Source: Ostrea edulis
Taxonomy: Eukaryota
Direction of reading: 5' to 3'
Assembly: GCF_947568905.1 (NCBI RefSeq)
Contig: NC_079165.1
Span: forward strand, 12,338,001-12,402,000
Length of the DNA stretch: 64,000 nucleotides
The notes beneath the pieces were generated by a model that saw only the letters and a program-made list of their open reading frames with translations, had not been told where the DNA came from and searched no databases. Within the stretch, counting starts at the first letter, position 1; each line of letters starts with the position of its first letter. Both the position numbers and the translations under genes were made by a program. Of this stretch, positions 1,523 through 34,886 are shown one piece after another.

Positions 1523-4500
1523 ATGATCTTTAGCCTCTGGTGGATAACGTGTACATTTATCATCGTCTTCCCTACCTCATCAGGTAAGAAAAAAAAATCT
1601 TCATCTCTTTTGAGAATTTTACTATAAAATCCAATTGAATAATTACCACTGATTTAAATAAAAAAGGAATTGGTTGTAAAAAAATTTTTTACGTCCCTCG
1701 CGAGAATATTTCACTCACATGGAGACAGTGGCCGATTTAGAGGAGGGCACAACCCCCCCTCCCCCTAAAATTTTCAAATTTAAGGTAAATCGCGGTATCT
1801 TGATTCGGAAAATGTACTAAACGATAAAAGAAGCAATAATTTCTTCCACTCCCGGAGAAATAAATGGCAAAATCCTTTGATTTTTTGAATTACTTTATTA
1901 GGAGAACCTAATTTTTTCCAAAAAAACCCCCTAAAAATTTGGGTCATTTTATAAATTTCACCTTATTAAAATCATTGAAAATAGTACAAATGACTTGATA
2001 AGAGAAATATTTCAAGCCCCATAAAATCTGTAAAATCCGGGGGCTTCGCCCCCTGGACCCACACCAGGACTTCGCCCTGGACCTACTGCCTCATAAAGTG
2101 GCGCCCCCCCCCCCCCCCCCCCCCCTGTAACCACAATTCCTGGATCCGCCCCTGGGAGATGCCACCATTGCCGGTGAAGGGCTGCAAAATTTAAGGCTTT
2201 TAATCTTTGAGGAGGGAGGGATCTTTATCGCGCCACACCTGTTGTGACACAGGACATGGGTTTTTGCGGCCTCATCCGAAGGATCCCCCCCCCCCCCCCA
2301 TTTAGTCGCCTCTTACGATAAGCAAGGTGTATTGGGGACCTATTCTTACCCGGATCCCCATGGGAAAAATTGGACTTAAATAGAAATAATAACTATCCCA
2401 GGTCAATTTTTTTTGTTCATGAGCAGAATTAGAATATATTCGGGACTGTGAGATGATCGAGAACACTGAAAAATAAAAAAGAAAGAGAATGATCTGAATC
2501 TAGCAGTGAAAAAAAAACCCCAGTTAGATATAGAGAACTCTCTCTTTCTCTCTCTCATTTGAACTTGTTCGCTTAAAATGAATAAAGTTTTATGTTTATA
2601 TATCGGAACAAGTAGCGGTAACTTACTTTAACAGTGTGGAACGCTCTACTCAAAAAGTAAGAATTCGTTAATATTAATTAAGGGTGTGGAAAATATCAAC
2701 ATAATGTATTATGTAATAATACTCATGAAGAATGGTTAATGAAGACCAAAATGAAATACTTCAAGGACGTATAATGTCCGCGGGGTGTGTTAGATACGTG
2801 TGAAATTTTGATAGAGATCGGGAGACATGGTTAAACTCATAGGGTTCAACCATACCGGCTTAAAAGGGTCAGATGAACTTAGACCCGCGAGATTAGCAGT
2901 AATATTAAATCTTTACATCATAAATAAAAGACAATTGTTATCCATCCTCTCAATAAAAGCAAGCTTTCGTTGAATTCTGGTAACATGTCTGCGTTTAACA
3001 TTTAATTCTTTTGTACGATATTCCAATTATCATCATTATTATTTTTTGGCCTTTTAAACGTGAAAGGACAACGCCTTCTGAAGGTCAGATGTGCAAAAAC
3101 ATGAGAGAATAATATCTACGTGTTTCATTGCCCACAATGCTTTATAATAGTTCAGAAAATCCACAATTGATAAAACCAAACCCGGATAGATATTGTACAT
3201 CCGCTTAAAGTTGACAGATTAAAGGGAAATACCCCCCCCCCTCCCCCCGAATCCGGGTTACATACACAAAGTGTTTTCATATTCGAAAAATGGATTCCGT
3301 GTTTAATATCTGTTGTAAATCCCAACCCAATGAAATTCCAAATGTAAAACATCCATGGACGAGAGGTCTTGGAATTTTTATACCATATCTATGAAGAGAA
3401 ATCAATTCTACATACAATGTAGATCCAGATTTATAAAATACAATAATAGCTTTCACTATATTCATCTACTCAAAGTCATCCGAACAAAGTAAAAATTTAC
3501 TTAGTCATTGATTTAATTTAATGAATAAATATAACGATCCATTCGGACAAAACCCATTTGTAAAGCGCTTAGTTAACATTGATGAGATTCTCGTGTATTT
3601 TAGCGTTGATGGAGAATTTATATCCCATTAACAGTAAATAATAAAACCGATACACCAAGTGTGGCGACTGATTTGGTTAATGAGTTACATCGTGTACAAA
3701 AAGGAGCACATTGATTTTTTCCTGCATCATCTTTTATTGAAATTCTTGTGATTCTTCAATTGAAAAAAAGTCACGGTTCGTTATAGATTGAAAAGACAAG
3801 GTTTTCTAAGGCCAGTCTCTTTATGAAGCTGCAATTCAGATCGATATTGATTAATTCTTTTATTATGAAGACTGGCATATTGAGTTGTCTGTTAGAAAAT
3901 TCTGCTATTTTGTTTGAATTAACACAAAACCCCATATACATTACAGATTCGTTTTCATTGAACTTTCATCGCATTCTAATTGCCAATTTCTTATCTAAGA
4001 TCAATCATTGAAATTTGAATTCTTTTAAACTCAATTCTTGTTCACCGAGAACCTCATATTCACTGTTCATATATTTCTATCTATTTCTTCTTCATATATG
4101 TAATGCTTCTGTCTCTCTGGTCGGAGGATTTTTGTGTGCAATTCGGATTTATTTTTCAAAATCTTAAAGCAACCGATTCTTTAATAAATTCTATTTAAAC
4201 GTGATATAACGTTTATGTAAATATTCAATTCAAACACACAACTATTGCATAATTGCACATTTCTTTTTTCTATATTGGATGTACCGAAAATTTGAAACTT
4301 TCACAAAAGAAACCCTGAATTGCATGTTCAAGAAGCTTAATCTTTAATATGCCTTTTATTGTGCAATTTTTCAAATCCATTTATCATTCTATAATCACAA
4401 TGCACCTGGGTTTTGAATGCAGATTTGCAATCAACGCTGTGGGATTAAGAGAGCTAAGCAAATCTAGGGAACGTTCTGTACATGATCACCCGAAATATCG

Positions 4501-7500
4501 GAGACAGTGACGTCAGAGATCGGTTAAATTTAAAAATAAAATGACAGGGAATGTATCGACTAATTAACAATTCCCTGGTGAGTTCTAAAAACTCCGTATA
4601 GAAGGATATAATGGAATATCTGTCTAATCATTTTTAGACGTATCTTTAAAATTCGAACTATATCATACATGTACAGCCTAGTATCTTCTGTATATACTAC
4701 ATGTACAGCCTAGTATCTTCTGTATATACTACATGTACAGCCTAGTATCTTCTGTATATACTACATGTACAGCCTAGTATCTTCTGTATATACTACATGT
4801 ACAGCCTAGTATCTTCTGTATATACTACATGTACAGCCTAGTATCTTCTGTATATACTACATGTACAGCCTAGTATTTTCTGTATATACTACATGTACAG
4901 CCTACTATCTTCTGTATATACTACATGTACAGTCTAGTATCTTCTGTATATACATGTACAGCCTAGTATCTTCTGTATATACTACATGTACAGCCTAGTA
5001 TCTTCTGTATATACTACATGTACAGCCTAGTATCTTCTGTATATACTACATATACAGCCTACTATCTTCTGTATATACTACATGTACAGCCTAGTATCTT
5101 CTGTATATACTACATGTACAGCCTAGTATCTTCTGTATATACTACATGTACAGCCTAGTATCTTCTGTATATACTACATGTACAGCCTAGTATCTTCTGT
5201 ATATACTACATGTACAGTCTAGTATCTTCTGTATATACTACATGTACAGCCTAGTATCTTCTGTATATACTACATGTACAGCCTAGTATCTTCTGTATAT
5301 ACTACATGTACAGCCTACTATCTTCTGTATATACTACATGTACAGCCTACTATCTTCTGTATATACTACATGTACAGCCTACTATCTTCTGTATATACTA
5401 CATGTACAGCCTAGTATCTTCTGTATATACTACATGTACAGCCTAGTATCTTCTGTATATACTACATGTACAGCCTAGTATCTTCTGTATATACTACATG
5501 TACAGCCTAGTATCTTCTGTATATACTACATGTACAGCCTACTATCTTCTGTATATACTACATGTACAGCCTACTATCTTCTGTATATACTACATGTACA
5601 GCCTAGTATCTTCTGTATATACTACATGTACAGCCTAGTATCTTCTGTATATACTACATGTACAGCCTAGTATCTTCTGTATATACTACATGTACAGCCT
5701 AGTATCTTCTGTATATACTACATGTACAGCCTAGTATCTTCTGTATATACTACATGTATATCAAGGTTGAAGTATTTTGGGATATCATTATCCATGCTCT
5801 AATTAATTATGAAACATTTACTGATAAGATTTTATCTAATTATTCATTTAATTCATGTTCATAAAATCTCTAAATTCTTTTGCCGTTAATCACTTATGGT
5901 CTTAAATTGCTCTTTTCTTAGATGAACGTCTTGCATGATGGACATCGAATGATATTATACAATTGTCTCGCAATTAATTGTTACAACCCTTAATGTAAAA
6001 CACTCTTCATGGAAAAACAACACCCCCTAACAACAGCACAGTAACAATAACAACAATATTAACAACAACAATAAAATCAACAACAATAACAACAAAACAA
6101 CAACAACCCATTACAACAGCACCGTAACAATAATAACAACACACAACAAAAGTACAACAATAACACAACAAAACCAACGCATGTTAAGAACACAACTGTC
6201 GCACCTCTTCATGTAATACTTTTGATAGCAGCTGTAGTAGTCTGTCTGATTGAAATGCACGTTCTCGTGAAATTCATGATACTATCAAATAAAACACTAT
6301 TAACCGAGGTCAACTGTCTCGATAGGGTGCTAGGCGCTACCACGATGCATTTGTCTAAGTAAAAAAGCAAGCCCGTTGGTGTTAGTATTCAATGAAACAT
6401 GCAAGTTACAACGAGATCCCTAACAGGCTCTTTATTCCCACAAAGAAAGTGCAAAATCCACAACGGGAGTTCCAAAATCCTGAAGAGAAACTCCAGATCC
6501 ACAAAAGGAGCACAACTTCCACAAGACCGTCACACTCCACAACGGGAACTTCAAACTGAGAAGCCAAGGCTCCAAACGAGGGTCTCCAAACTCTATAATG
6601 AGAACCCAAGGTTCCAAACGAGGATCTCCAAACTCTATAAACTCTCATTATAGAGTTTGGAGCTCCTCGTTTGGAATTTTGGGTTCTCATTATAGAGTTT
6701 GGAGACCCTCGTTTGGAGATCCAAACTTTATAATGAGAACCCAAGGCTCCAAACGAGGATCTCCAAACTCTATAATGAGAACACAAGGCTCCAAACGAGG
6801 AGCTCCAAACTCCTCAAGAGAAGGTCTACACTTCTAAAACGGGAGTTCAAGATTCTACAAGAGAAACCCCAGATGCCATAATGGAGCCCTAGACTCCACA
6901 ATGGGAACTTCAAACTCCAAGGTCCAAACCCCATACACAGCAGGAACTCCAGATTCCACAACAAGAGTAATATATTTCACAAGAGGGACCCTCAACAAGA
7001 TTCCACAACAGGAGAAACTCCAGACACTACAGCTGGAAGCACATAAGAGGAATACTAGACTCCAAAACAGGTGTTCCAAGGGAATCTGTGCGGATCTCCC
7101 TAGAAACGAATACACCGTAAACATAGAGCAATACAATTGCTGAAGTCCAATTTGCGTCTTCTTTTGCAAGACAATAAGAAACAAGTTGGAGCCATTTTCA
7201 TAATGTTCTTAAGAAAATCAGAATGGTTCAGAGAAAATTCTTACTCACCCTTAATGTAAAAAGAAACCTCTCGATAGCATTGCTTAGTTATCTGCTTTTG
7301 ACGTACAGTTTACATGGTAAGTTGCAATGAAACATTTTGAAGATAGCATGAAGATGATTTCCTTAACCTTTCTTAATAGGTTTTGTAGATTTTGTGAAAT
7401 TCCGAGGACACAATGAATTGAAATATACAACCTCTGATCTCCAAATTAAAGGGTCATTAAGATTTTGAAACAAGTCTCTTTGTATGGAGATCGTTTTGAC

Positions 7501-10500
7501 ATCCCCATGTTGTTTTGTGTTCCACATTCTTCTCGTATGCATGAGGAGCGCGTGTAGATAAACTTGTTATGACCCATTAATCTTCGAAGGTGGTCAAGTG
7601 AAAGGATTTTAATTACATTCAACAATTCATCTGCAATTCATGAGCAAAATGCAGCGAAGTTTAAATGGCACAACCCGGGCAATTTGTAGTTCGATTACAA
7701 TTAAAAAGCACGGTGCATTGTATTGCTGTATTGGTTGATTTACCTCCAAATGAACAATGAAAATTCAAAACCCCATTATTTCGTAAAATGTAGAACAGTT
7801 TCCAGATTATTTGTACTTGATGTTATCCAATTCGTCATAACAATAAGCATTAATGTTAAAACGTTCGAAGATCTTTTTTTTTTTTTTACATGAATTAAAA
7901 ACAATTAGATTTCCGAATGTATTATATACGGTTCATAGTAAATAGATTATTTTAATATGGTCCTCTCCTTTGATAGAGGCAATCATGTTTCGAAAGAATG
8001 TTTTATACATGATACATGTAATGAGACGTACACGTATATCTTAGTCTATACCAAAGTGATCCAATTTCCTTGAATATTTTACACAGAAATATTCCCGGGA
8101 AAACACTGCTTATTAAAAAGGTGAACGTGTATAATTTTAAATTTTCTTTTCTCTTTATCTTCTAGAAAGCACGTGCACATTTCCTTCAGAGATAGAGGGG
8201 GACTGGTACAGTGGCCACAAAGGAAAGCTGACCTTCAACTCCACGCACCTGACAGGTTACCCTATCTATATGTCCAATGCCGTGCAATCGTTAGATTTCG
8301 AATGCTACATAAACAGTGACAGAAAATATCTTCTGAGGTACAAAAAGGCTTCTCTTTGAAGTCATAATGTAAATTTAGAAGCTAGACTTCATTCTTAGAC
8401 GTTTCGAATTTTCATATTCTTTATGCAACGTTGCTTTAGGCGATTCTAACATATTGGAGAGTTTCTGAGACGACAAAATACTTTTTTCTCTGTAATTCAT
8501 AATATTACTGCTGATATCAGGTATCTTGGTATCGATTAACTTACACCGGTACTGTCTCCTCCTAAGGTTCAAGCACTCTAGTGGGGTAGGTAATGAACAT
8601 ATGAACTGCGTTCCTTTATAATCCCAGAGACGACAAAAAGACTTAAGCACTAGATAAGGAAACATTGGTATTTTAATGGGAGGTAAACAACCTTCTTATC
8701 TGAGTGCCCGCTGATACATTAGAGCCAGGTGGTGGATTTACGTATCAAGATTGATAAACCTCCATCCTAAATAAAGAAATGATTAGAAATATGTTGCGGA
8801 CTCATACATCGATGATTGATTGAAATAGAATGACTTGTATCTGAGTGCGTACTCCTTTGACTTTAAGTGATTAATTGTTGAATCCAGAAATGAAGAGATT
8901 AAAGTCCTAAAGATAAGCATATTTACAAGATATATTAGATTTCTTACAGACCATGTAATCTACATGTGAAAATAATGTACCCTAAAATTGATCCTGTTTC
9001 TTTATTTTGTGTGACGGGATAAACTCTCGGGACTTTCGGTATGATTATGTGCCGTCAACGAATGCAAATTACATGGTTTTTATACTGGTTTTTTTTATTG
9101 TGCCTTTGGTAAAACAAGAAATACAAAATTTTCATTTGTTAATCTCGTCCATAATACTGAATCATGTCAATTCTTAATTCAAATTCTATCGTCATTATAA
9201 CGATCTAGTTTGGCAATATAACTTGACATTGGGTCAAGTGCTGTCTGGCGTGTTTCTTACCTATTGTTAAGCGGTTCTTTACACACTGATTTTGACTACG
9301 GAATTACTCCGTTTACCTGATCAAGATGTAGGGCTCACAGCGGGTGGGACCGATCTACAGGAGATATTTACTCCTCCTTGCTTACTCCTCCTACGCACCT
9401 GATCCCACCTCTGGTATATCCAGGGGTCCATGTTTGCCTAAATCTTTATTTTGTACTCCATATGGGAGTTATGGGGTTACTCACTGTTCGTTATCTTCAC
9501 TTTACCATCACTTTTTCATACAAGTGAAACAAAACTAGAAGACTTAAAATTTTTGTTTGCGAAAATAGAATCATCAATTTTACATTATACGATTTGTTGA
9601 TTTCAGAGCTACGGATACCGCCCTTGTGTTTGGGCAATACATTCGTGGTTATATATGCCTCGAATTATGGAGAATTTCCAGCACAAAGTACTACTACTAT
9701 CACGGAACAAGTAAGTGCCATCTCTAGATCAAATAAAGAACATATGAATAAACAAGATGATTTATATCATTTCAACGACAATGACAACTCCTCAATATCT
9801 CTCTGTAAACTAAATGAATAGAAAGCTTAGGCATCTGAAACTCAATACCAAGTCTGGTTCGAAAATTCTTTTAACTAATACAAAACATCGGTCTGAAACG
9901 CAATATAATGCTGAGTATTGTCTGATAATGTTAAGAAAAACAAATTCAATGAAAAATGCACTTATCAAGAAATTTAATGAAAATGCACTTATCAACAAAG
10001 GTATCAGTTTGACCAACAATGACAATGTCTATGGCCGAGTGGACGCCATCACAGTAGACACTACCAGTGCTTGTAATGAGGTTGAGCCCTATAATAAGGG
10101 CTCATTTGTTACCTTAGTGAAGAACGGTACGGAACGCCTTGGTCTATACCATAAACTGACATGTTCACGGTCTGGTCACTAATAGCGTGTTAAGCAGTTG
10201 TCGGATTTGTTTGGGGCACAGTTATGTGAACATCACACGTACATGTTTCAACCTTCACATAATCTCTGTTACTAATATGATTAATTTTGACAAAACGTGA
10301 ACTTGCACGTACGAAGAGGTTTTGAATTGATTAAGAAAATATTTTTTTTAAAGATAAAGTTTTTGAGCATGGTTGAACAATAAATGTTTGTATTGATGTC
10401 CAAAAGGACAGCGCTTAAATGTAACGAGAAAAGGATAAAGCCGTGACCAACAATCTGCTTTGATAGAACTTAACCTTGTTTTGTCATGCTCTAGCGAACT

Positions 10501-13500
10501 TAACCTTGTTTTGTCATGCTCTAGCGAACTTAACCTTGTTTTGTCATGCTCTAGCGAACTTAAACTTGTTTTGTCATGCTCTAGCGATCACGGCAACAAA
10601 CAATGACAACGTTAGGGGCTTCATTGACTCTTTTGCAACCGGAACAGTTGAGAACACTTGTGATATAGTAGAACCTTACAACACATCAGCGTTTGTTATA
10701 CTAGTTAAAGATGGTAAAAATAGCTATATATCTATCTATCTCATTTATGCTTTTGATTTCGTGTTGTGGAGATGTATTTGTTGTATAGAATATAGCGTTT
10801 TATTTTTGCATGGAGTGAAGTTTCCTCCTGGGTATGGTGTATCCCTCTCTACATCAATTCAGCTTTTTTGTTGTTATTCTACACCCTGTAGACCTGGTTA
10901 AATGTGGCTTGGATTATCATATATTTATTGTTATTTTGTATGCAAATGTGCACAATCTATTTCAAATATTGAATTTATTTTTAGAGTTTTTCATTCAATT
11001 TTATGTTTTTGGATGTTGTTGGTTGCACTGTTTTCAATTTGCGGTGTGTGTTTTTCTGTTGTGTGATTTTTGTTCACTTTAACTTCTATTTACATGCAAT
11101 TTGTCAGACTTCACTATGAACGATACTCAAATGCACATTTAATCAAATGCAGATTACAAGGTGAGAGTACTTTTATATTCTATTTGATATATGTAATATC
11201 TATACATGTATAAATATTTTTAGTGTAAGATCTTATCATAGAATAGTCTATCAGTCTACCTTTATGTAATTCTGCCAAAATGAAAGCATTGTATGCATAA
11301 ACGATTACTTTATTAACAGTATATATTTGTTCAGTGTTCTACAATGACTGAAAATTATATATCAAGTTAAAACACAATAGAAATTATTCAAACATATCTT
11401 ATATTTAATTACTAGGGTCGATCTCGACGGGGGCATCTGAAGCCACATGCGCAACCGACCTACTGGCATCATTTAGCGCTGTTTCGATTACAGACTCAAC
11501 CGGAAGTACGTCATGTTCCAATAACGTGATGGATGGTTGTACCGACAAAACAGAAATGAGATTTACATATGATGCCGGATGTGGAAATACCCTCAAATTC
11601 TCAAGTAAGTTAAAAAATTGACATTTACCAATATACTATAAGCAACATAGAGTATATCTGGTAATATACTACAAGTAACATAGAATATATCTGGTAATAT
11701 ACTGTAAGTACATACACTATATCAGGTAATATACTATAAGTACATACAGTATATCAGGTAATATACTATAAGTACATACACTATATCAGGTAATATACTA
11801 TAAGTACATACTATATATCAGCTAATATACTATAAGTACATACAGTTGATCAGGTAATATACTATAAGTAACATAGAGTATATCTGGTAATATACTATAA
11901 GTACATATACTATATCAGGTAATATACTATAAGTACGTGCTCTATATCAGGTAATATACTATAAGTATATACAGGATATCAGGTAATATACTATAAGTAT
12001 ATAGAGTATATCACGTAATATACTATAAATAAAATAGTATATCAGTCAACCGGTCAACAGGGGATGCTTACTCCTCCTAGGCACCTTGTCCCACCTCTGG
12101 TATATCCAAGGGTCCGTGTATACCCAACTCTCTATTTTGTATTGCTTATAGGAGTTATGAGATTGATCACAGTTCGTTATCTTCACCTTTCATTAAGGAA
12201 TATAATTGTAGCTGATGGGTTTTTGATAGATGTATGATTATAATTGTAGCTGATGGTTCTTTGGTAGATGAATGAATAGCATTGTAGCTGAAGGTTTTTG
12301 ATAGATGAATGAATATAATTGTAGCTGATGGTTTTTGGACCTGTATGCACAGCGTGTCAAGCGGCGGGTACACGTATTTGTCCTTGTGGAACAATGACAG
12401 CACTGTTGTTGGGAAAACGACCTATTCATATAACTCGGGGGACAACTATCAGTTTGCCTGTTTAGTGAGTAAAGCATATCAACAGAAAAGAAATTACCAA
12501 ATCTCTAAAGGAGACAATAGTGTATATAACGATTTTTTTTTCAAGTTTTGTAGAAAAATCGAACTATCATACAATGTTTTTAAAATTCTGCTAAATCTCA
12601 GAAAATATATTACAGGTGATTAGCGGAGCTTCGGCGACAATGTTTCCGAATTTTTGTTCAGACAGTACACAGACAACCACTACAGTTGCCTCCCCTGGGC
12701 TACAGTTGTCATTCACAAGTGCCACCACAACGTGTTGTAAGTTTTCCATTGAAATATGGATTCTAACTGTATACACCTTCATACCATGACTGACAGACGT
12801 CTCCATATTAAACAATATTCAATCAATCATACCATGAATTTTGTCTACAATATGATACATATCTAGTCGTTATACAAATGAAAGGTGAATACATTGCTGA
12901 ACTATGTCAATCAAGATCATCAATATAAGTATAAATTTAGTACACCAAGAATTGTTATCAGTGGCCTGACTTTCAATTTCTTTCCAGTTACAGTAAAAAA
13001 CGATTTCAGCTAACACATCTATGATGATTTCACGCTTAAAGCGAAGTGATTTCTATTCCATGTAGTTATATTATGAATTCATTGGATGTAAAACTTATAC
13101 GGTACCAATTTTGATGCACCAGATGCGCATTTTGACACATAATGTCTCTTTAATGATAACGAATTATCCTTATAACGAATCAAAATTGCTCATATCACCA
13201 TCACTTCGCTATAAGCGTGTTTTACTGTATTTGAAGCACGGTTATCAATTTGACATGTTACTGCTTCAGATGAAGAAGTAGAGGGAGGATCAAGCGCAGT
13301 GTATTACATCACGATAGTGTTAGGATCCTTGTTCATCATAGCTCTGATTATCTTAATCATAATCCTAAAGAAAAAAGGATACTGTTCCCTTCAAAAATGC
13401 AAGAAGCAGAGACCCGGATCTCCAGAAAGCACTGTAGAGCAGGGAGAACATGTGACTAATACTGTTTTTAAAATGAACAAATTGGACCCAATCCCTGGAT

Positions 13501-13709
13501 TCAAGGCCAAGAGACCTCTTCGTATTGGACCCATTGTAGAACCTAATTTGGATCCTCTTCCGAAGGTTGAACCATTGTATGCACTGTCTGATAGAAAGGA
13601 CACTACAAAACCACCCAAAAGAGGTTCGATTGGCAGTCTTTTTACTTGTGATGTCTCAACGTTCTTAATTGATAAACACATCCCTCCAACTGAAAATGTA
13701 AAGCGTTAA
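1523..13709 (+). CDS. Gene A: type-I single-pass membrane protein with Cys-rich ectodomain (DUF7042/7043/7044-like, tentative), ~451 aa with one copy of exon 4
   Basis: Phase-consistent GT-AG exons: 1523-1583 (MIFSLWWITCTFIIVFPTSS, signal peptide), 8166-8337 (ESTCTFPSEIEGDWYSGHKGKLTFN...DFECY...KYLLR), 9607-9710 (ATDTALVFG...YICLELW...YYYYHGT), 10001-10126 and/or 10585-10713, 11416-11604, 12325-12464, 12616-12736, 13270-13709 (TM VYYITIVLGSLFIIALIILIIIL, then KKK and the tail). Homologous exon by exon to genes B and C. Confidence 0.88.
1684..2364 (-). mobile_element. SINE copy (same family as 441-699) interrupted by a DNA element
   Basis: Halves 1684-1725 and 2155-2364 rejoin to the same sequence as 441-699. 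Confidence 0.8.
1726..2154. mobile_element. Non-autonomous TIR DNA element with 5-bp TSD
   Basis: Ends are CAGTGGCCGATTT and GGATCCGCCCCTG (imperfect TIR). GGAGA is duplicated at 1721-1725 and 2155-2159. Confidence 0.85.
4667..5759. repeat. 32-bp minisatellite, ~34 copies (TACATGTACAGCCTAGTATCTTCTGTATATAC)
   Basis: Direct periodicity of 32, for example 4681 and 4713. Confidence 0.97.
6030..6176. repeat. Degenerate (AAC)n low-complexity tract
   Basis: Runs of aacaacaac and aacaataac. Confidence 0.8.
6560..6812. repeat. 42-bp tandem repeat with an internally inverted block (~6644-6719)
   Basis: Units of CCAAGGCTCCAAACGAGGATCTCCAAACTCTATAATGAGAAC. The central units read CTCATTATAGAGTTTGGAG..., the reverse complement. 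Confidence 0.9.
9178..9503 (+). mobile_element. 3' fragment of Penelope-like retroelement
   Basis: Same tail as 17495-18480 (cacctgatcccacctctggt...ttcgttatcttcac), preceded by the decayed end of the ORF (...YNDLV..YNLTLGQVLSGVF). Confidence 0.75.
10001..10126 (+). CDS. Gene A exon 4A, duplicate of exon 4B (10585-10713)
   Basis: Encodes ISLTNNDNVYGRVDAITVDTTSACNEVEPYNKGSFVTLVKNG. Phase 1-1, donor G|gtacgg, weak acceptor (caacaaag). Confidence 0.55.
10466..10585. repeat. 30-bp tandem repeat x4 containing the exon 4B splice acceptor
   Basis: GAACTTAACCTTGTTTTGTCATGCTCTAGC at 10466, 10496, 10526 and 10556. Confidence 0.95.
11630..12040. repeat. ~32-bp minisatellite (ATATCAGGTAATATACTATAAGTACATACACT), ~13 copies
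   Basis: Visible periodicity. Confidence 0.92.
12045..12192 (+). mobile_element. Penelope-like 3' tail fragment
   Basis: ggggatgcttactcctcctaggcacc...cccacctctggtatatcc...gttcgttatcttcacctttc. Confidence 0.75.
12201..12338. repeat. 37-38-bp tandem repeat x4 overlapping the acceptor of the 12325 exon
   Basis: ATTGTAG|CTGATGGTTTTTG recurs with AG at 12210, 12248, 12286 and 12323. Confidence 0.9.
13085..13158. repeat. Short dispersed repeat, second copy at ~23548-23584
   Basis: gtaaaacttatacggtaccaattttgatgcaccag is identical in both places. Confidence 0.75.
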
Positions 13710-14483
13710 AGATGTTTTCTATTTTTTAAAGTATATTTTCCTATAACTATAATTATATTTATATATGAATTGTATGAATTAACAATCCAAAGCTCTATAT
13801 TGATAATTCTATATTAAATGTTAGTGTTGTGTTCTTGCTGTAACATTCTCTCCACAGTGTTAACTTTCTAACATGTGTGACTGTGTTGTGTTATAGATGA
13901 GCATTCATTGTTACACAGAGTATTGTAAACAGTACTAGTCACCCACTTCCTGTGTTGAACTGTATTCATCTGCTAATTTCTTTTTCAATGTTGGGAATAG
14001 GCAGATATGGAAACAAGGTTTTTAATCATAATGGGTGATTTCATAGGTGAATGCATGTACATGTAGATAATTTGTTAATTTATAATGTGATGTACATGAT
14101 CGATTCATTGCTTACATTCAATATATTATCATAACGGTTCTAGAAACATTATGCATCATCGACTTATTATTGTAACATTCACAATTATCGTGTGGGTAAT
14201 TGCATCGAAAAGTATAAAATATGTGTACATGCAAGTTTGAGAGAGAGAGAGAGAGAGAGGTAACAGTGGTGGCGCATTTTTATATTTGTTAGAGTTACAC
14301 CCCTTTGTCCCACAATAACCCGCATTATTAATTTCCGCCTGGTATAACCACAGTTTAGTTAACCATGTCATGTTCCCCTTGACTATTTACCCTTTACGCA
14401 ATCGTCTTCCAATTTTACCCCTTATTCACCCTTTCGTAATTAAATCACTAACTGGAAATATTTCTCGAAATTTTGTCTTGTAG

Positions 14484-14662
14484 GACTGAGGGAAATGTAT
14501 CGTTCTGATGACTGCTTTCTTTACCATTCATATGATCAATTGTATCATTCATACGAGAAGCTGTACAGCTCACAGGAGTCCGTTTATCATCCAGAAGTAA
14601 AATGTGAAAGCCCTAATTACACAAATTATCCTTCCGTGATATGTGAAAGTCCCAATCACTAG
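14484..14662 (+). CDS. Orphan Tyr-rich exon candidate
   Basis: Acceptor ttttgtcttgtag. Phase-1 frame is GLREMYRSDDCFLYHSYDQLYHSYEKLYSSQESVYHPEVKCESPNYTNYPSVICESPNH*. No upstream partner exon identified. Confidence 0.3.
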
Positions 14663-15106
14663 TATTCTTCCACATGAATCGGGCAAGCCTTTCAAATCTC
14701 TTCTTAAGCAAGTAATGAAGACTCCAACCCCAAAGGTGCTCTAATCTGCAGTGTCATTGTCTAGGGAAATAGCTTTAGATAATGAAAATCATCTATTTTA
14801 TGAAGTTTCATATTTTTCACAAGTTGTTTCTGTTTTTATACCTTTGCTGCAGTAGATGTGTGGAAATTTTTATTTCGTGTGATTTTGTGATGTTTATAAA
14901 AAATCGTAAATATCTTGTTCAGTTGTTGAAGAACTGTGATATACAGATTGTGATATAAAAAGTGTGATGTTTATATTGTGTTCAATGCAATAAAGTATGT
15001 TCACGAAACTAATCAGTTGTTCAATGTATGCTATTAACACGTTCTTATTGCTTATGTAGAAAAGCTTCACATCACTTGCAAAGCAATGTACATTTCTTTG
15101 TCATAG

Positions 15107-20059: not shown

Positions 20060-21533
20060 CGAGGGCAAATCAATAAGTACCCAGCCTAATTTATTTCCGG
20101 TTGCGATCCACCTCTTCTTTTTCGTTGTAATTGCCCTCTAGTGAGAACTGAAAAGTAAGGGTTCTTCCCATTGACCCACTCCTTAACTGCCATCACAACT
20201 TCGTCAGACCGGAAATGACGTCCACGAATATCCTTTTTCAAGTTTGGGAATAGGAAGAAGTCGCTAGGAGCTAGGTCAGGCGAATAGGCAGGATGTGGTA
20301 TTAATTCATACCCGTTTCGCTCTACAGCATCCATTGCAACTTTGCAAGTGTGGATTCTCGCGTTATCCTGTTGCAGCAAAACACCTTTAGAGAGTTTACC
20401 TCGGCGTTTTTGACGGATGGCGGTTCTCATCTGTTCTAGCAAGTTTGCATAGTACACTCCAGTTATTGTACTTCTCTTGGGTAAAAAGTCTAATATAATA
20501 ACACCTTTTGCGTCCCAAATTACTGTGGCCATCACCTTTCCAGCAGATGGTTGCATTTTGAACTTCTTTGGCCTCGGGGACCAAGGCCCTACCCACTCAC
20601 GACACTGAGCTTTATTCTAAGGCTGATAATAATGAACCCAAGTTTCATCTACTGTCGCAAGACGCAACAGAAAATCATCTTTTGATCTAAAATGCTTCAA
20701 CAAGGTGCTGCAAACTGAAGCTCTGGTTGCCATTTGCTCATTGCTAAGGGATTTGGGGGACCCAACGGGCTGTTAGCTTGCGCGTACCTTAACGATCATG
20801 TAAAATTCTTGAAACGCTACCATTGATTGATTGATTGATGTTTAGCGCCACACTCAACAATATTTCAGTTATATGGTGGCGCCCCGTTTTTTTATTGGTG
20901 GAAGAGAGAACCCAGATACAATGTACCTGGGAAGAGACCACCGACCTTCCGCAAGTAAACTGGGAAACTTTTTTACTTACCGGCGCGAGCGGGATTCGAA
21001 CCCGCGCCGAGCAGAGATGAGAGGCCGTGTGATTTAGAGCGCGATACTCTAACCACTCCGCCACGGAGGCCCCTCGCTACCATGTGAAATGCCTAATGTC
21101 TGCGTTTTTTCTTCCACCTGAATTTGCCTATCAGAGTATACCAGTTCCCGAACTTTCTTACACTTTTCTTCGTCGGTGGCATCCAGTGGGCGTTCAGACC
21201 TGGCATCATCTTCTAAAGACGTTCTACCGTGTTTGAATTCCCCTACCCAGAATTTAACCTGCGCATAAGATGGTGTAGAAGACCCATAACCATCGACTAA
21301 CTCGCCGTGTATTTCCTTGCCTGTTTAACCTTCTAAATACAAGTACCGAATTATAGCACGGTACTCAACTTTAGTTGAAAATCATACCGTTGCATCACTA
21401 GCCATATTTGACATTCAATATCTTTTTAAAGAATGACTCGATACGCGTGCAATTATGTACCCAGGTATGAAAATCGTGACCGTCTTGGTCAATCGGAAAT
21501 GGGATATGCTGGTTACTTATTGACTCGCCCTCG
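20060..21533 (-). mobile_element. Mariner (D,D34D) transposon, full-length but inactivated
   Basis: TIRs CGAGGGCAAATCAATAAGTACCCAGC / GCTGGTTACTTATTGACTCGCCCTCG, each flanked by TA. Transposase motifs ARWVP, VDETW, QDNA and YSPDLAPSD. Contains a frameshift, an in-frame stop and a SINE insertion. Confidence 0.95.
20824..21074 (-). mobile_element. Full-length tRNA-derived SINE (V-SINE-like) inserted in the mariner
   Basis: Head GGGGCCTCCGTGGCGGAGTGGTTAGAG...GGTTCGAATCCC, (CAAT)n tail, and 9-bp TSD CGCTACCAT at 20815-20823 and 21075-21083. Confidence 0.92.
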
Positions 21534-21611
21534 TATATATGAAAAATATAAGTGCAAATTTGCATCAAAATTTATTAACATTCACATTATAGAGGTTACA
21601 AGTCTTGTTTA

Positions 21612-21930
21612 TAGGTAATATTTTGCAGATTCTGTGGTCGTTATATCGATCTTATTTGCAAATACAGCTTGTCGTTAGGTCGAATGATGTGTGTCATGTT
21701 TTACACCAACTGTTAAGACTTTTTACGTACTGATTTTCACTACGGTTTACTTAGTTTACATGTACCTAATTAAGATACATGCTTCAAGGCGGTGTGATCA
21801 GTTAACAGGGGATTCTTTCTCCTTCTAGACACGTGATCCCACCTCTGGTGTGTACAGGGGTTCGTGTTTACCCTACTCTTAATTTTGTATTGATGATATA
21901 CATTACTGTTTGTTATCTTCACCTTTCCAT
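21612..21930 (+). mobile_element. Penelope-like 3' fragment
   Basis: Same ORF end and tail (gatcccacctctggtgtgtacagggg...ttatcttcacctttc) as 9178 and 17495. Confidence 0.72.
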
Positions 21931-23125: not shown

Positions 23126-26100
23126 TCAAGTTTCGGTATCGAGCGTATCCGTCGAATTCGCTGCAATGTTCGTGAATGACACTTCCTGGTTCTGCGTAGA
23201 AGGTTTCTTCTTGAAGAAATCGCACATCTCTTTTCTGAAGAATTTGATGATAATCACAATGAAACCAATAATTATGATGACGAAGACTACAATTGCAAAA
23301 TAGATAGCCCAGTTTGTGGTAGGTTCCCTTTTCTTTCTAGGAGGTTTTGTGTGCCCTGTTCCTCTACCAGGCGGAGGAGCTGAATACAGAGAGAAGATAG
23401 TCCAATTCATTTCTATTTTGCATTTAACATATCCGGTAGTGATACTACGGTATTATTTTACGAACAGTAAGGGATGTTTCCATTCAAAAGAAATTAATTT
23501 GCATTGTCATTTTACAAATATCAATCTTTCTGAACGTATCATATTGCATGTAAAACTTATACGGTACCAATTTTGATGCACCAGTATGTAATATGAAAAA
23601 TAGTTAAAGTAAAATAGGTACAAAACAGACTAGCACTATATACATTGTAAATTACATGTTTATTCATTTATTTTTATTTTTGGCTAGCTAATGAATTAGT
23701 TTTTAAGGAGCGAATTATTCGTCCAATCGGTATTTCCACAAAGGACGAAGATATGATGGGCAACCCCCCCCCCTCTCTCGCTCTCCTTCCCTTGCATATG
23801 TAGGTTAATGTTAATTGCATCTTTATCATTATCCTTGTGTACATGTAAATCATAATATATCATTTACCTGGCGTAGTGGGTAGACATGTTTCTGAAACAA
23901 AAAAGAAATCATCGAAAGATTGAAGTTGAAATATTAAAGACCACCTTCATTTCATATGACACATCAATCACAGTGACAAAGCTCAAAGCTTTACATAGTG
24001 ATGCTTTACCGTTGATTTGCTTTGATTTCATTTTGAGAAATTCCGAAGCATGTGGTACATCGCTGCAGGTATCGTTAAATAATTGAAATACTGTAGAGGA
24101 CTCTTCTTGGGATATTTCCTATAAAGATTATAAATCAATTTAGAATATTTCTGATGGTTGCATTCTATATTAGAGTTTTTACATTGTTAATTACGTTCAA
24201 TTATTTTCAAAAAACATCTTTCATGTCAGATTTTTGTTTCATGTGATGCGTTGAATTTGATAACTCCTCCGTTTAACAAATCAATATACAAATAATTTGT
24301 CAGTACTAACAATGCAAATGAATCCATGACTAATTGATGAAGCAGAAAATGCATCGTCTGTCCATGTGTACAAATAGGTGATGTCATTCACTGTTTTGTG
24401 AAACAGACAGTGAAGGAGAAGAACATCTGAAAATAACAAAATGAATTACATTGATTTTATAGTGCAAAAATTAGCATACTCCTTACACTTACATTATGTC
24501 TTTTAACTGATTCGAAACGCGAGAACATAGTCTGCGCAGGATCAATTTTTAGAATCGAGGCAGGCTACTGGCGAATCAGTCGATGTTGTAGGGGTTTCAA
24601 CAGTGTCGTTTAAAAGAAAGGTGAAGATAACCAACAGTGATCAATCTCATAAATTCTATAAGCAATACAAAATAGATAGTTGGGCAAACACGGACCCCTG
24701 GACACACCAGAGGTGGGATCAGGTCATTAAAGGCAATATATCTTAAATTCTATGGTCGTTATAATTATACAACCCGTCATTAGGTTCAATGCTGTTTTAT
24801 GTTTTTCATACTAATTGTGTAACCGTTCTTTACACACTAATTTTGACTACCGGATGTAAAGCTTAAATTAATAAAGAGCTTGGTATTCTTTTTGGTATTC
24901 ACGGGATTGATTACCGTTCGTTATCTTTACTTTTTCATGTATATAGAAATGTATCACTACCTGGAATATAAGTATTGGATTGACATGATGAACTGGTGGA
25001 GATGGCGACTTGTGTGTTCTTCGCACATCCAGTGACGTAACTATCTATACATGCATTTTCTGTGCCGTTTTCATCTGCAGATAAACTCACGTAGGAATTC
25101 TTCAAGACGCTTGGACAGTCTACACTAACTATGTCCTCGCTCGACACTTGAAAATAAAATATTCTATGCATATATGCGCTTGGATTTTGTTTGTTTATTT
25201 ATTCATTTTTGCTTTCTTTCTGACATTGCATATGCCCAATAATAAAATTAGTATATTTCGTTTGCCATAAAGAAAATTAAAGATAAATGTAAAATGATCA
25301 ATTCTTTCTCATATACAAATATGACTCACCATTTTTAATTAGGCTATACATGTTGTCTATTGTGTTGGGGACAGTACATACGTCATCCATTGATGCATTC
25401 ATCTGATTCGACAAAGCATATATATTCTCGTTGACTGTTTTCTCTAGAGGTGTTGCAACATGATACATGTAATTGTCTGATTTCACTCTATCAAAACTAA
25501 GACAAAAGTACACGCTAACTTTGATGGAAAACACATCCACGTCTCGAGGAGATCTGTAATGACGTAACAAGATAAAAACGTGTTGCAAAACCTACACTCA
25601 TATTCTACCTTAAGATAGAGAGAGAGGAGGATGAGAGAAAAAAATAATCAAGGAATTATTCGAAAGGTTTATGAATTCTACTTAACCTTCTTATGATTAT
25701 ATCAGATAGGCAATTAGTTAATATTGGCAGCAAGACGAGCGAAAGCTTACTTAAGCAGGTAGTGCGTCCCATTGTTTTGAACACAGTGGAAATCCAGGGA
25801 AATTACTGCCGGTAAAATGACCGGATAATCATATATCACAGAGTCGCTGAACCTCAGGAAACCTTTGTCGGAGCTGATCCACACGCCTCTTAGATCCGAC
25901 GGGAACTGACATGACGAGGCATATATTGCTGTTAAAATATTTATTGGGAAAAATATGGCAAAGTGATTGATTTTGTGTTTCTTTTTACTTGAATTGCTCA
26001 TACTCAATATTCTTTAAAGTGCATTGAAACTAGAAACGTAGCAAAACATTAATATTTGATCAATGAAATAAATAATGCATACACAGCATCTTAAAAGTAT

Positions 26101-26196
26101 AAGTAAAATATATACAAGGCTGAAGACACACTTTTGGAGGGATATTTTACCCGTGACTCCTATGAATGTATGCAGGATAAAAATCATCAACGCCAT
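23126..26196 (-). CDS. Gene B: paralogous type-I membrane protein, ~370 aa
   Basis: Phase-consistent exons: 26196-26151 (MALMIFILHTFIGVT), 25928-25751 (SSCQFPSDLRGVWISSDKG...LDFHC...HYLLK), 25553-25330, 25146-24961, 24426-24311 (VLLLHCLF...GFICI), 24118-24010, 23379-23126 (RKKR, TM WAIYFAIVVFVIIIIGFIVIII, short tail). Confidence 0.88.
24622..24935. mobile_element. Two Penelope-like tail fragments in opposite orientation (24622-24724 minus, ~24755-24935 plus) in a gene B intron
   Basis: Both match the tail at 12045-12192 and 9178-9503. Confidence 0.68.
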
Positions 26197-27337
26197 TCTT
26201 CGTTTTTGCTTTTTTTTTCCTAAGGATTCCCACAAGTGGAATATTGATTTCACAAGTCACAATGCATTTTTCATTCAGAATAGACCTTTAAATGGAAATG
26301 AGAAATTCAAATTCAGTTAGAATTTGATAATTCCCTAATGCAGCTACAACACTTGGTAAGGACGATTTGTTTATCAACTCATTTAATCATAACGACGGTA
26401 TTTCAGAGGACAATGAAGGTGGATGGAAACAGCAGATACATATAAAACAATCAATAATCTTTCGAAATTGAATTAATAAAAACAATTTTAAAAATGTTTT
26501 GATAGATACAGCTATGTATTTTATATTTCATATTCATGTTGTATTTTACTGACCCGAATCAATATGAAAGAAAATACATTTACCTTTTTCGATCCTTATC
26601 AAAAATCCATTATGCGATTAAATGTTCCTCGTCCTCCTGCTTGTGCACTTCTTCACGAATAAATTCGTCGGTGATATATCGAAAATTTATTTTGAAGCTT
26701 AAGCCGCCTCGTTCCTTCAGTATTATATATTTCTTTCGTATATTTTAATGGATAAGGGTTTGGTTATTCAGTTGGTCGAAAGCATGTTTAATAATCGATC
26801 AGTGTTTAAAGGGAATATGAATGCGAGCGTGCCTTGGGTATTGTATTGGAAAAAAGTGCACGCATTCAAACAGTGAAATGTCTACACTGAATGTCCACAA
26901 AATTTAGATAACACAGATATGAATGTAAAGCGACAATGGATTAATCAGAAATTTTAACAAATGTCCATTGTAGTGTTTGGCGTTCATTAAACTACTCAGT
27001 TCTAACACATAAGAAGAAAAAAGAAAGATAACTCTAGATCTTTTATTGATCTACCAAGTTAGGAAATATATATTTCATGTGTGGAACTATCTAAAGTGCC
27101 AATTTAAAACATTCATCATATAAACTAATAGTCTTCAAAACATTATATTACTGCCAAAACAATTTATATTTTCCTATGGTTTAATTGTGAACCGGAAGAA
27201 TCTATACTCCCATCATGCACCACACGCTTTGGGTTTCCTGGTTATTCAATCCATAAGAACATCATTATTGAAGTCCCACTGTCTTTTAAAGCATTAATCA
27301 ATAAATACATGTATATCACTTCCTTTTGCACCAAATA

Positions 27338-30188
27338 TTAACAAGATTCAGATCCAAATGATACATCTTCATCATCCACTTCATCTCTGCTGATGATGGA
27401 AATGGTGGAAAATGGACTTGCTGCTCTAAAGATGGCCGAGTCAAAGCTGTAGAGACTGAGTCCATCTGGTTTTCTTGGCATTTTCCCGCGCATATAATCC
27501 ACTATGGTGTCAGTATATATGCACGTGATTTTTGGAGGAGGATGGATGGGTAGATTATCGATACTGAAGTCAGACTTGAATAAAGGAACAATTTGAATTG
27601 ACCGTTTGGGTCTGAAGTAATTGACAGGTTTGGAAACGGTGACCATTGCCTTTTTATGGTCAAAGCGTTGATGTCTCACTTTTTCCCCTTCCCCCATGAC
27701 AAGTGCTTTCTCTTCTTTTTTCTTCTTCATGTAAACTTTTAGACGTTTGCATAGCAATGCAAAAATCACGATCATGACAATTATAAACAGTCCCAGTAAT
27801 ATGAACAGGTAGTTAAGATCGGCAACAAACGGAGCTTCCGTGGTAGCTGAGAAAGGAAAATGTCAACACTGTGTAAAATATTGTCTTGATTTTAAAATTG
27901 ATGTTTAATTGAAAACAAAATCTCAACATTCTTAAGAGAGAAAATGCCTGATGAATAGACTTACGTACTTGGAATCAGAACTTGACAAGTATCTGAAAAA
28001 AGAGTTAGTGCTTGATATAAAAGGAAACAAAAGTATCTTTTCCTCTAGAAAAGAGGGACGTTATAGTGAATTGCATAAATGCTGGTCAGCTGTAAATCAT
28101 TCTGTTAAACCTGTGATGTCTTTCATTTCTAATGAAGAGGTCTCTGACGGATATTCTGTAAAGTTTATTGAATTTCCACAAAAGTTTGGTCTCTCATCCA
28201 GAAGCACCGTGCCATTCATATAATTTGTCATTTTCTACAAGTAGAGAGTTATAAAAAGCCATGATGCGTGTAATTGATATTGCACTGTGTAGTTTCTAAG
28301 CATCAGCAGTGGAATGAACAACATTGATTTCAGAAGTTTGTGGTTTAACTTACAAAACATGAAAATCTGAATGTTGAAGACGACAGCGTTTCATCGTTAT
28401 TCCATACAGAAAAATACGCCTGGTCATCAATAGTTCTTGTGTAAATGCATGTATACAGACCTCCGCCTGCAAACAAAACAGTCTTATTAGTTCCAAAACA
28501 ATTCTTTTGTTTCTGAAAATTATTTCGTGGATTTTTCGATTTTCATGAAACTCTTATTTTTCATTTTTTTTTTACAGTACAAACAAGAACACCTCCAATC
28601 AGTACCTGAGAGAGTTTTTTGTGTGCATTCATCTTGAGTGAAATTAAGCATGGTCTTGTTGGTGCAGCCATCGAGTTGTGCCGCCGCACAATTTTCGGAT
28701 GTACCCGACTGGCTTGTAAATGTAACATTGCTGTACACCTTCTGTAGGGCCTCAGGACACAGAGTTTGTATGGCATTATTTTCCACAGCGTCTATGAAAA
28801 TTACCCAGGATTCTTGTCACATAATATTATTGTCATCCGTAAATATTGAGTAGCGTTTTGGAAAACAATGACAAAGAGAGCCCTTTCGCTTTGGTATCCA
28901 TTGTCTTTGTGAATATGTACTTAAATGCTTATTGGTTTAGCGATGTGTGACCATTAAGGAAATGACCTCTATATGATTCGCATAATTACATCCGATATTT
29001 CTGTACTAAATTCATTATTTGGCGTACGTATGCACTACGTCATATGACATACCTTTTCGTAGTAGAACAATAAAATTGACGGGGTCTATGTAGCTACGAG
29101 TACAAATATTCTCATGGGAGTTGGATTTATCTTCAGCGATACCGACCATATTTTCTCGAATCAAGTTATCTACAGCTAAAACAAAAATTCGCAAGTTTAA
29201 AAAAAAAACCCACTTTTTATGGTTACTTTCATTTATTTCATCTCTACACACATGTAACGACATTGATGGAATAATGTACTCTACCTGTTGCATGGTAATA
29301 GTAGTTCAACTGGTCATTCACATTGTAGATATCAAGACAGATGTAAAAGAAGACGTTGGTTCCGAATATCACATTGAAGTTCACAGATCTACACAAAGCT
29401 TGATATTGTTAGTGAGGAAACAAATTTCTTTCTGTTGCAATAAACAACCAGGACAAACAAAACATATATCGAGTGATAAAAGTAATAATTTTCAAAGAAT
29501 GTGTGGTGCCCATAATTATTTTATATAAATTCCATGGATTCACTCAATTTGTTGTACTGATGCCGTGAAATCGACAGGGAATGCTTATTCCTCTTAGACA
29601 CCTGATCCCACCTCTGGTGTATCTAGGGGTTTGTGTTTGCCCTTCTCTTGAGTTTTGCATTCTTTGCGGGAATTATGAGAGATTGATCACTGTTCGCTAT
29701 CTTCACCATTTTACTTTTAATGTCCATGTTAAATGTGCTTACCTGATTGTGTACCGGTTGGTACCGACTTCAGTGAGACAAGTGAAATTATAGTAATCAA
29801 TTGTTGGATTGCTCGGGTCTGCAGACGGAATATAAACCTTGTAGTTATATATATAATCTGAGGTAATGGTTAGGTTTCCTCTTTCCGCACTTGTCCAGTC
29901 TCCCACCAAATAACTCGGAAAAGTGCACGTTCCCTCTGTATCATAAGATTAGAACAAATTAATTCAGGCAAATTAAATAAACTTCAGCGTGATTCAATAC
30001 ATGTAGACCTCTGTAACGTTTTATCTGCATGTTCTATATGAAATATTATATCTTACATGCAGCCATATATAGAAGATTCAGATATATTTATGCACGGTTA
30101 TATTTAAGGACATATTACCTGCAAATAGTATATTCAGCCCAAATACACACATAGCTTCAAAGAAATATGTCTTCATATTGAAAATCAT
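27338..30188 (-). CDS. Gene C: paralogous type-I membrane protein, ~473 aa
   Basis: Phase-consistent exons: 30188-30119 (MIFNMKTYFFEAMCVFGLNILFA), 29935-29743 (EGTCTFPSYLVGDWTSAERG...NFTC...RYTIR), 29388-29285, 29175-29053, 28791-28606, 28466-28354, 28234-28111 (weak donor gtttaa), 27846-27338 (TM YLFILLGLFIIVMIVIFALLC, long tail). Same intron positions as gene A. Confidence 0.88.
29568..29712 (+). mobile_element. Penelope-like 3' tail fragment in gene C intron
   Basis: cagggaatgcttattcctcttagacacctgatcccacctctgg...ttcgctatcttcacc. Confidence 0.72.
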
Positions 30189-32580: not shown

Positions 32581-32647
32581 TTTAAAGAAGTACACGTATG
32601 TCGTCTTGTTTAATTTTCTCAATATGTACAATCATACAATTTTCTGA

Positions 32648-33392: not shown

Positions 33393-34886
33393 CTGTGTGT
33401 ATCCACGGTAAACATAACGGAGAAATAAAATCTCAGAGATTCGCTGATCTGTAAATTGATTACATTTCTTGGAATATTATATGGATAATGTACATGTAAA
33501 TTATCGCATTTATTGCTGCGGTAGTGATGATACATAGTTCGGCGTCTCAGGAAGATTATCAAAAATGTTAAAGTGTACATGAACATTCCAAAAATTAACA
33601 CAGGCACCGGAAGTGTGGATAGCCTGTATAGATCTTATGTACATATCCTCCCCCCTTCTAGAATGAAATTATTTTTATACAGAGTCAATAATTTAATATC
33701 CAAAATATATTATTTCCCCACCGATCACCCTCATAAGTCGTTCTGAATAATCAGTTTCTACCTTATGTAAGGTTTTGAGATGACCACTTGTGAGATACTA
33801 ATATATATGTAAAGGTGTGCAACAAATCACGTAAACAAACAGGGGGCTACCTGCTTCGAGACCGATTCACGGGGTATAAACCAACTTTATCGAAGGAATT
33901 TCTGCAAATATTTCGTCAGGATGATGTAGTTCTACTTAAGTCTTTCATCTAAATCCCATGTCATCCTTTTTATTTGTCATATTCTGCCATTTATTTCATC
34001 GTACCCGAGATTTTACGCCCATTGACAGCCTTAAAGGACGTCGTGACATCACTTTACACATATAATAGTATCTCACAAGTGGTCAACTCAAAAGCTTACA
34101 GAAGGTAAAAACTGACTATTCAGAACGACTTATGAGGGTGATCGGTGGGGGAAATAACCCTAACCCATATTTTGGATATTAAATTATTGGTTCTGTATAA
34201 AAATAATGTCATTCAAGAATGGGGGTATGTACATAAGATCTATACAAGCTATTCACACTCCAGGTGCCTGTGGAAATTAAGTGTCCTAAACTACAATAAG
34301 AAATGTAAGGAATTTCATAGAACAACCAAAAAAGCTAGCTACCAGTTTGTTGCCAACACAGATACGCACGTGTGAGCGCGCGCGTGCACACACACATAAA
34401 GCTCAAACGACACGAACACTAAATTTTCAAGATTTCGGGACAGTCCGTATCTTCCTCAAGAAAAAGAAGCTAATTACACGCGAACAAGAAACAACTGATC
34501 ATTAATAAGTGGGCTATTTATAAGGAAATGGAAAAAAAAACCAAAAACCAAAAAACCCAACAAACTCAGCACCATTTGTAAACTGATTGACCACAAAATT
34601 CTTTTCTAATTTCAAACTTTAAAGAATTTGGAACTTTCATAACAAATGTGGGTACAAGAACTTGACAACAAGTCACATGGTGCTTGAATGAAAACAAATT
34701 ATTAGTTCTTCATGAAACCCTTTCTTTGTTTCAAAGGTGTAAAGTCTAGTACTCTACCGGGACTGCTGTCGGTGGGGTAGAAAAAAAAACCTGTACCCAC
34801 AGGCTGACGTTTTATTAAAGAACAATCCCCTTTGTCAATAGCTATCCAGGTGCACTTAAATTTCGGTGGAAACGAACAAGAAGTAA
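33393..34886 (-). pseudogene. Gene D: decayed fourth paralog of the A/B/C family
   Basis: Exon from 34886 encodes TSCSFPPKFKCTWIAIDKG, then two frameshifts (..LFFNKTSACGY.., RVLDFT). The next phase-2 exon starts at 34290 and is split by the 33599-34272 MITE; the restored empty site reads LGHLIFG (compare LVFG and VIFG). Confidence 0.65.
33599..34272. mobile_element. MITE with ~200-bp TIRs (CACAGGCACC...GGTGCCTGTG) and 8-bp TSD
   Basis: Long inverted arms. Flanks are AAAATTAA (33591-98) and GAAATTAA (34273-80). Same family as 41852-42263. Confidence 0.88.

Follow-up and report, generated by a model that had tools for sequence, protein, structure and literature searches.

Calycin barrels, such as those of the lipocalins, FABP/myelin P2, avidins and nitrobindin, typically enclose small hydrophobic molecules. 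A pair of barrels at the cell surface has been described in APCDD1, which spans the membrane once and contains two apposed beta-barrels of weak lipocalin/P2 likeness and 12 disulfide-bonded cysteines, one pair of which links both domains; its domain ABD2 holds a lipid pocket and binds WNT7A (PMC10193966). We analyzed a stretch of 64,000 nucleotides from the oyster Ostrea edulis (RefSeq assembly GCF_947568905.1, contig NC_079165.1, positions 12,338,001 to 12,402,000 of the forward strand), hereafter the window, which is AT-rich (~35% GC) and rich in introns and repeats. It contains three genes for membrane proteins, A (1523–15597, plus strand), B (26196–23126, minus strand) and C (30188–27338, minus strand), which are members of the invertebrate DUF7043/7044 + DUF7042 family (PF23070/PF23071 + PF23069). 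With a confidence slightly better than even, we regard them as three ancient paralogous genes whose products likely bind a hydrophobic or lipid-modified ligand at the cell surface, in a manner coupled to their tails.

The closest described proteins, from molluscs and arthropods, have the same domain order and cysteine pattern as A, B and C. The oyster proteins lie at or just under the Pfam cut-offs and are predicted to consist of two barrels, followed by a transmembrane helix and, in A and C, a motif-bearing tail; unlike them, the arthropod proteins of the Atlas clusters are longer (550–720 aa) and often carry DUF7045. Compared with calycins, the oyster barrels show only 6–14% identity and differ in being arranged in tandem, anchored in the membrane and presumably held by about six disulfides. 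With APCDD1 and APCDD1L, a vertebrate WNT inhibitor, they have in common the type I single-pass plan, the two barrels and 12 cysteines. However, the oyster barrels measure ~140 aa, while those of APCDD1 contain helix-loop inserts and reach ~200 aa. Moreover, no homology between the two oyster barrels is detected, in contrast to ABD1 and ABD2, which are homologous.

Gene structures and transcription

A six-frame scan of the window revealed the motif CxFPx4GxW at exactly three sites (+8174, −25911 and −29927), each adjoined by an exon with Cx7Cx12-13C (+11514, −25051 and −28690). The three genes are complete, all their introns are GT-AG and none has an internal stop.

B and C are spliced and transcribed. 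Assembled contigs of 1.5–2.2 kb, from two runs of one study (X1 and X2; C was looked at within a 6-kb stretch), skip exactly all 7 predicted introns of B and the 5 introns of C that they cover, so that 12 of the 12 covered coding junctions are confirmed. The joints end in CT..AC, as minus-strand GT-AG introns do, except at the C intron 28467–28605, where the joint is shifted by two bases and reads GC..GT. Low-coverage DNA runs of O. edulis read straight across the exon-intron boundaries of both genes. An earlier reading of these letters (the original prediction) had described real spliced genes for single-pass proteins with a conserved cysteine scaffold and had stated that a lack of reads spliced across the predicted junctions would speak against it. 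The intact GT-AG models bear out the former, and this objection falls away, as the contigs are spliced at such junctions in B and C. Its description of the cluster as hidden does not hold, as C already has a RefSeq entry and the annotation of Crassostrea and Saccostrea includes orthologues of all three genes.

Gene C has nine coding exons and encodes 481 aa. The signal peptide is on exon 1 (30188–30119), followed by 29935–29743, 29388–29285, 29175–29053, an exon with four cysteines (28791–28606), 28466–28354, 28234–28111, a 24-nt exon with the last cysteine (27992–27969) and an exon for the transmembrane helix and tail (27846–27338). The product of O. edulis LOC125654591, P0150, annotated as “uncharacterized protein”, threads letter for letter onto these nine GT-AG exons.

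The junctions of A and B were set as the phase-compatible GT-AG pair with the best score against the nearest orthologue, the guides being Crassostrea gigas LOC105321884 isoforms P0003 and P0112 for A and P0019 for B. Gene B has eight coding exons and encodes 378 aa. These are 26196–26151 (signal peptide), 25928–25751, 25553–25330, which corresponds to two fused exons of A and C, 25146–24961 (four cysteines), 24426–24311, 24118–24010, 23891–23868 (24 nt, last cysteine) and 23379–23126 (transmembrane helix and short tail). Its 5' part (26151–26700, minus strand) comprises the ATG exon, which extends to 26283, an intron in the 5' untranslated region (26284–26581) and an upstream non-coding exon from 26582. 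The joint 26283|26582, with 298 nucleotides skipped and CT..AC ends, is present in contigs of both X1 and X2. No O. edulis entry for gene B was found in the word-indexed homologue searches, which gave few proteins.

Gene A has ten coding exons: 1523–1583 (signal peptide), 8166–8337, 9607–9710, 10001–10126 and 10585–10713 (copies 1 and 2 of a duplicated exon), 11416–11604 (four cysteines), 12325–12464, 12616–12736, 13270–13623 (transmembrane helix and tail) and 15254–15597 (lysine-rich tail with NPF). The product measures 536/537 aa if a single copy of the duplicated exon is included and 579 aa if both are, and it is 79.6% identical to C. gigas P0003. The original prediction was right that this gene is real but had missed the last exon. 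Judged by sequence, 1523–1583 is the best candidate for the first exon, and 7223–7316 is a possible alternative. The donor at 13623 (GTTCGA) is weak; if it is unused, read-through of 13624–13709 to a stop at 13707–13709 (plus strand) would yield a 450-aa isoform without the NPF and the lysine-rich tail.

The two copies of the duplicated exon (126 and 129 nt) are 51% identical as protein, both of phase 1-1 and of a length divisible by 3; the fourth conserved cysteine is encoded in each. Both are found in C. gigas, where P0112 includes the two copies and P0003 copy 1 only. Because the presence of both together would lead to a 13th cysteine, the copies are likely used in a mutually exclusive manner.

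Layout of the three proteins

Each of the three proteins comprises a signal peptide starting with M(AL)MIF, an ectodomain with numerous N-glycosylation sequons, one transmembrane helix and a tail. From the first to the last conserved cysteine, the ectodomains span 268–281 aa, and they are 27–32% identical between paralogues. Twelve cysteines align in A, B and C; MAFFT directly aligns 10 of them, the other two being shifted by local gaps. In the family, 11 are kept in 32–34 of 34 members, the first being invariant, while 25 of 34 have the twelfth, a “TC” close to the membrane, and 9 lack it. The eleven aligned cysteines of the original prediction are thus near-invariant family-wide, but the count within the three genes is 12. 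A tblastx comparison of the paralogous loci linked the first exons alone and mostly picked up intronic repeats, because A, B and C are too diverged.

A and C, like many bivalve relatives, have the motifs F[RK][PA]KR.[IL]..P and PK[VI]x[PC][LI]Y in the tail. Tails of the C type also contain DYM...LSLYSF, and that of A an acidic NPF and a lysine-rich end. B has a short tail devoid of all these motifs. That the tails differ, as first proposed, is therefore correct for B, but A and C share motifs kept across bivalves.

Membership in the DUF7043/7044 + DUF7042 family

The Pfam and fold results presented here rest on P0150, on orthologues and on single exons of A and B. When 1.84 billion representative proteins were searched with a profile built on the first ectodomain exon, 111 relatives were recovered. 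The family is represented in oysters, scallops, ark clams, unionids, Mya and gastropods, in each case by proteins without names. Among 35 members, DUF7043 is matched by 31, DUF7042 by 24 and DUF7044 by 21, in agreement with the likeness to these domains that the original prediction had noted. The best expect values (E) are 8.4e-12 for DUF7042 and 7.7e-8 for DUF7043, and two members, P0009 and P0011, pass the curated Pfam cut-off for DUF7042, P0009 also that for DUF7043 (27.9 bits).

P0150, the product of gene C, matches PF23069 (DUF7042) with an E of 1.4e-5 and 25.4 bits, for a cut-off of 27, and its precomputed annotation carries PF23069; its match to DUF7043 (E 0.025, 15.4 bits) is also under the cut-off of 27. 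Exon 1 of A and B shows a sub-threshold match to the N-terminal half of DUF7044/7043 (DUF7044, E 4e-4), and the four-cysteine exon alone gives a sub-threshold match to DUF7042. By fold, an Atlas search recovered a DUF7042 cluster of molluscs (TM 0.56 over 301 aligned residues) and a DUF7042/43/44/45 cluster of arthropods (TM 0.41), and the Atlas feature search against DUF7042-45 clusters reached a score of 0.93. When the DUF704x families were excluded, the language-model atlas returned no other named family. Our search of a literature library found no paper naming DUF7042/7043/7044, their Pfam/InterPro identifiers or the LOC identifiers of the orthologues, which agrees with the earlier statement that no function is known.

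Predicted fold of the ectodomain

The structure of P0150 was predicted by AlphaFold2 with a 35-sequence alignment. The predicted ectodomain is all-beta, with a per-residue confidence (pLDDT) mostly >90, and is followed by the transmembrane helix and a disordered tail. Together with structure searches, the model indicates two tandem calycin (lipocalin/FABP-like) beta-barrels, with the eight-stranded antiparallel up-and-down architecture that defines calycins. In gene C, the predicted barrel 1 is encoded by the region 29053–29935 (minus strand; residues ~25–172), which includes CxFPx4GxW and matches DUF7043/DUF7044, and barrel 2 by 27969–28791 (minus strand; residues ~173–312), which matches DUF7042.

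Structural neighbours include lipocalins and myelin P2/FABP, and most of the top matches of barrel 2 are binders of lipids or small molecules. G35 and W37 are nearly invariant in the family, and this G35-x-W37 presumably corresponds to the G-x-W signature of calycins. No Pfam lipocalin or avidin match was found. An internal duplication is unsupported, as the hhalign comparison of barrel 1 with barrel 2 was not significant (probability 0.7%). We also considered an avidin-like N-terminus, with the pattern C..GxWT..G..LTI; P0150, scanned individually, has no Pfam match to the avidin family at E≤1, and the Foldseek matches to avidins have a root-mean-square deviation of ~8 Å.

We then compared the family with APCDD1. 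The Pfam APCDD1 model (PF14921) matches none of the 35 family members at E≤1. The family profile recovers no APCDD1 chain at E≤10 among PDB sequences, but only transmembrane-helix noise. Nor does APCDD1 rank among the top 50 of Foldseek PDB, VIA-wide or VIA second-look, although absence from these lists is not exclusion. Since the sequence, profile and structure tests of membership all failed, the likeness is architectural only: the oyster proteins may work like APCDD1, which is not to say that they are members of its family. The “APCDD1-like” label of the original prediction can be retained for the architecture, but not for kinship by Pfam or structural ranking.

Orthology and selection

A, B and C each have a 1:1 orthologue in C. 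gigas. Further orthologues of B are found in C. virginica and two Saccostrea species, and a further orthologue of C in Saccostrea echinata. In a 25-kb locus of C. gigas (L001), the C orthologue has nine exons with the same internal sizes as in O. edulis, and the B orthologue, with eight exons, lies directly downstream on the same strand. The internal exons of B are identical in size in both oysters (178, 224, 186, 116, 109 and 24 nt).

Rates of nonsynonymous (dN) and synonymous (dS) substitution between O. edulis and C. gigas were calculated for B and C by the Nei-Gojobori method (NG86). For C, dN is 0.144 overall, with 0.072 in barrel 1, 0.148 in barrel 2 and 0.141 in the tail; for B it is 0.289. 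As dS is >2 or not computable (saturated), dN/dS (omega) is ~0.1 or less. B is the fastest-evolving of the three genes, and the rate is higher in barrel 2 than in barrel 1. Our results show that A, B and C are old paralogues under purifying selection, conserved across oysters. Because the orthologues are 1:1, the tandem is conserved and omega is ~0.1 or less, the low identity between paralogues (25–31%) reflects their age and not fast evolution. The “rapidly diverging” family with “birth-and-death” turnover that had been proposed is not supported by these data or by the exon sizes kept in C. gigas.

A hidden Markov model of the family, run on the six frames of the whole window, recovered the exons of A, B and C and one marginal fragment only. 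This is an exon-1-like relic at 34923–34705 (minus strand; CSFPPKFKCTW..DKG..YP-x8-LDFTP), with the model match at 34884–34816 (score 10.2, independent E 0.047). It keeps the motif spacing of exon 1, but the conserved Gly and the second cysteine are gone, and it is weakly matched in tblastn by P0099 and P0027. No further family exon was detected with this model between 31.5 and 36 kb. The pseudogene of the original prediction is thus reduced to a single marginal exon, which lends birth-and-death turnover little support.

In C. gigas, the C orthologue has three alternative first coding exons (L001 10001–10040, 10931–10994 and 11069–11153), and the resulting alternative N-termini are not all signal-peptide-like. 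Upstream of it, on the opposite strand, L001 1–8764 contains three genes with a MIEAP domain (PF16026).

Proposed function and alternative explanations

The binding of a hydrophobic or lipid-modified ligand, which we favour with moderate to low confidence, would work as follows. The tandem calycin barrels suggested by the model may bind the ligand at the cell surface, and the tail motifs, namely the short Pro/Tyr motifs of A and C and the acidic NPF of A, would couple this binding to endocytosis or signalling. The short-tailed B could then be a non-signalling or decoy version. We favour this explanation because calycin barrels usually hold hydrophobic molecules, the G-x-W is kept and the tail motifs are conserved.

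Several points weigh against it. The RNA support consists of assembled contigs from one study, of an organism ~3–4% diverged and of guessed RNA status, and these contigs cover B and C, not gene A. Omega is only an upper-bound estimate, as dS is saturated. The window's own proteins fall just under the Pfam cut-offs. Finally, no ligand, pocket or partner of the barrels has been observed.

Alternatively, the barrels could be rigid scaffolds for protein-protein or glycan contacts, in adhesion, as a co-receptor or in the matrix, with no enclosed ligand. The same fold is found without lipid in potempin protease inhibitors, immunity proteins of the type VI secretion system and the lobes of TbpB, and the oyster ectodomains appear heavily disulfide-stapled and glycosylated. 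However, most top matches of barrel 2 bind lipids or small molecules, and the G-x-W, which we presume to be that of calycins, is kept. We consider such scaffolds unlikely, although no result obtained here separates them from ligand binders.

The ligand-binder explanation can also be extended to the whole family, which would then be an invertebrate-wide, unrecognised group of membrane-anchored tandem-calycin receptors, with APCDD1 as distant kin or functional analogue. Such receptors would capture lipids or lipidated signals (e.g., WNT or Hedgehog) and act via their PKxEPxY, SLYSF and NPF tails. We put this extension forward as a speculation that is rather doubtful.

The original prediction saw in the cluster the pattern of immune or recognition receptors evolving by birth and death. 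A fixed cysteine scaffold would then support surfaces that diversify fast against pathogens or non-self. The 27–32% identity of the paralogues around the fixed scaffold is consistent with this, as are the relic exon adjoining the cluster, the dN of B, twice that of C (0.29 vs. 0.14), the faster barrel 2, the numerous mollusc paralogues (111 clusters at 50% identity) and the many sequons on the ectodomains. Against it stand the 1:1 orthologues, the C-to-B tandem that is syntenic across oyster genera, and omega. Moreover, the window contains three genes only, with no lineage-specific expansion, the cytoplasmic motifs are conserved, Pfam detects no immunoreceptor tyrosine-based motif (ITAM/ITIM), TIR or death domain in the proteins, and the literature search yielded no expression or challenge data. 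Our analysis gave no positive evidence for an immune role, and we regard it as very unlikely.

That the proteins are remote APCDD1 homologues, whose second barrel would bind the palmitoleate of WNT or another lipidated morphogen and titrate this ligand, is most unlikely: the overall plan (signal peptide, two barrels, 12 cysteines and a single transmembrane helix) matches that of APCDD1 (PMC10193966) and, as for APCDD1, lipocalins and myelin P2/FABP are generic neighbours of the oyster barrels, but PF14921, the PDB profile search and the three structural top-50 lists were all negative, the barrels are smaller (~140 vs. ~200 aa), the homology between barrels is not seen (hhalign 0.7%), and invertebrates are reported to have true APCDD1 homologues at 25–40% identity (PMC10193966).

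Repeats and other sequence in the window

A short interspersed repeat, with the translation ..PDPTSGISRGPCLP.. / ..LIPPLVCPGVRVCPT.., occurs both in intergenic sequence and in introns of A, B and C. Copies lie at 24609–24745, 23548–23584, 9398–9506, 12082–12198, 16403–16516, 21830–21928 and 29572–29718. The word depth of the two copies that were checked is thousands-fold in all four runs, and the repeat is therefore a very high-copy element resembling a short interspersed nuclear element (SINE) or a miniature inverted-repeat transposable element (MITE). In intron 1 of gene A, the segment 6000–7200 contains overlapping low-complexity open reading frames on both strands with a degenerate repeat (..YRVWRSSFG.. 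/ ..SKLYNENPRLQTR..), which is probably a minisatellite and not coding.

Between A and B, the list of open reading frames points to transposon remnants at 20086–20556 (minus strand) and 17619–17968 (plus strand). A 156-aa frame in this interval resembles the C-terminus of a mariner/Tc1-type transposase (..DNARIHT..YSPDLAPSDFFLF..), and others resemble fragments of reverse transcriptase (..FRYIDDI..). At ~51200–59200, a long tandem or satellite-like array shows a short translated pattern recurring dozens of times; its GC content falls to 25–28% and its GC skew reaches −0.5.

Implications

As loci, A, B and C are ordinary predicted genes, and their interest lies in the family to which they belong, that of uncharacterised surface proteins widespread in molluscs and arthropods. 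The two-barrel calycin model, the scaffold of 11+1 cysteines, the cytoplasmic motifs and a set of three genes with contrasting tails offer a first testable handle on this family. Should lipids or lipidated ligands indeed be bound by the barrels, these proteins would represent an invertebrate counterpart of the surface lipid binders of the APCDD1 type.

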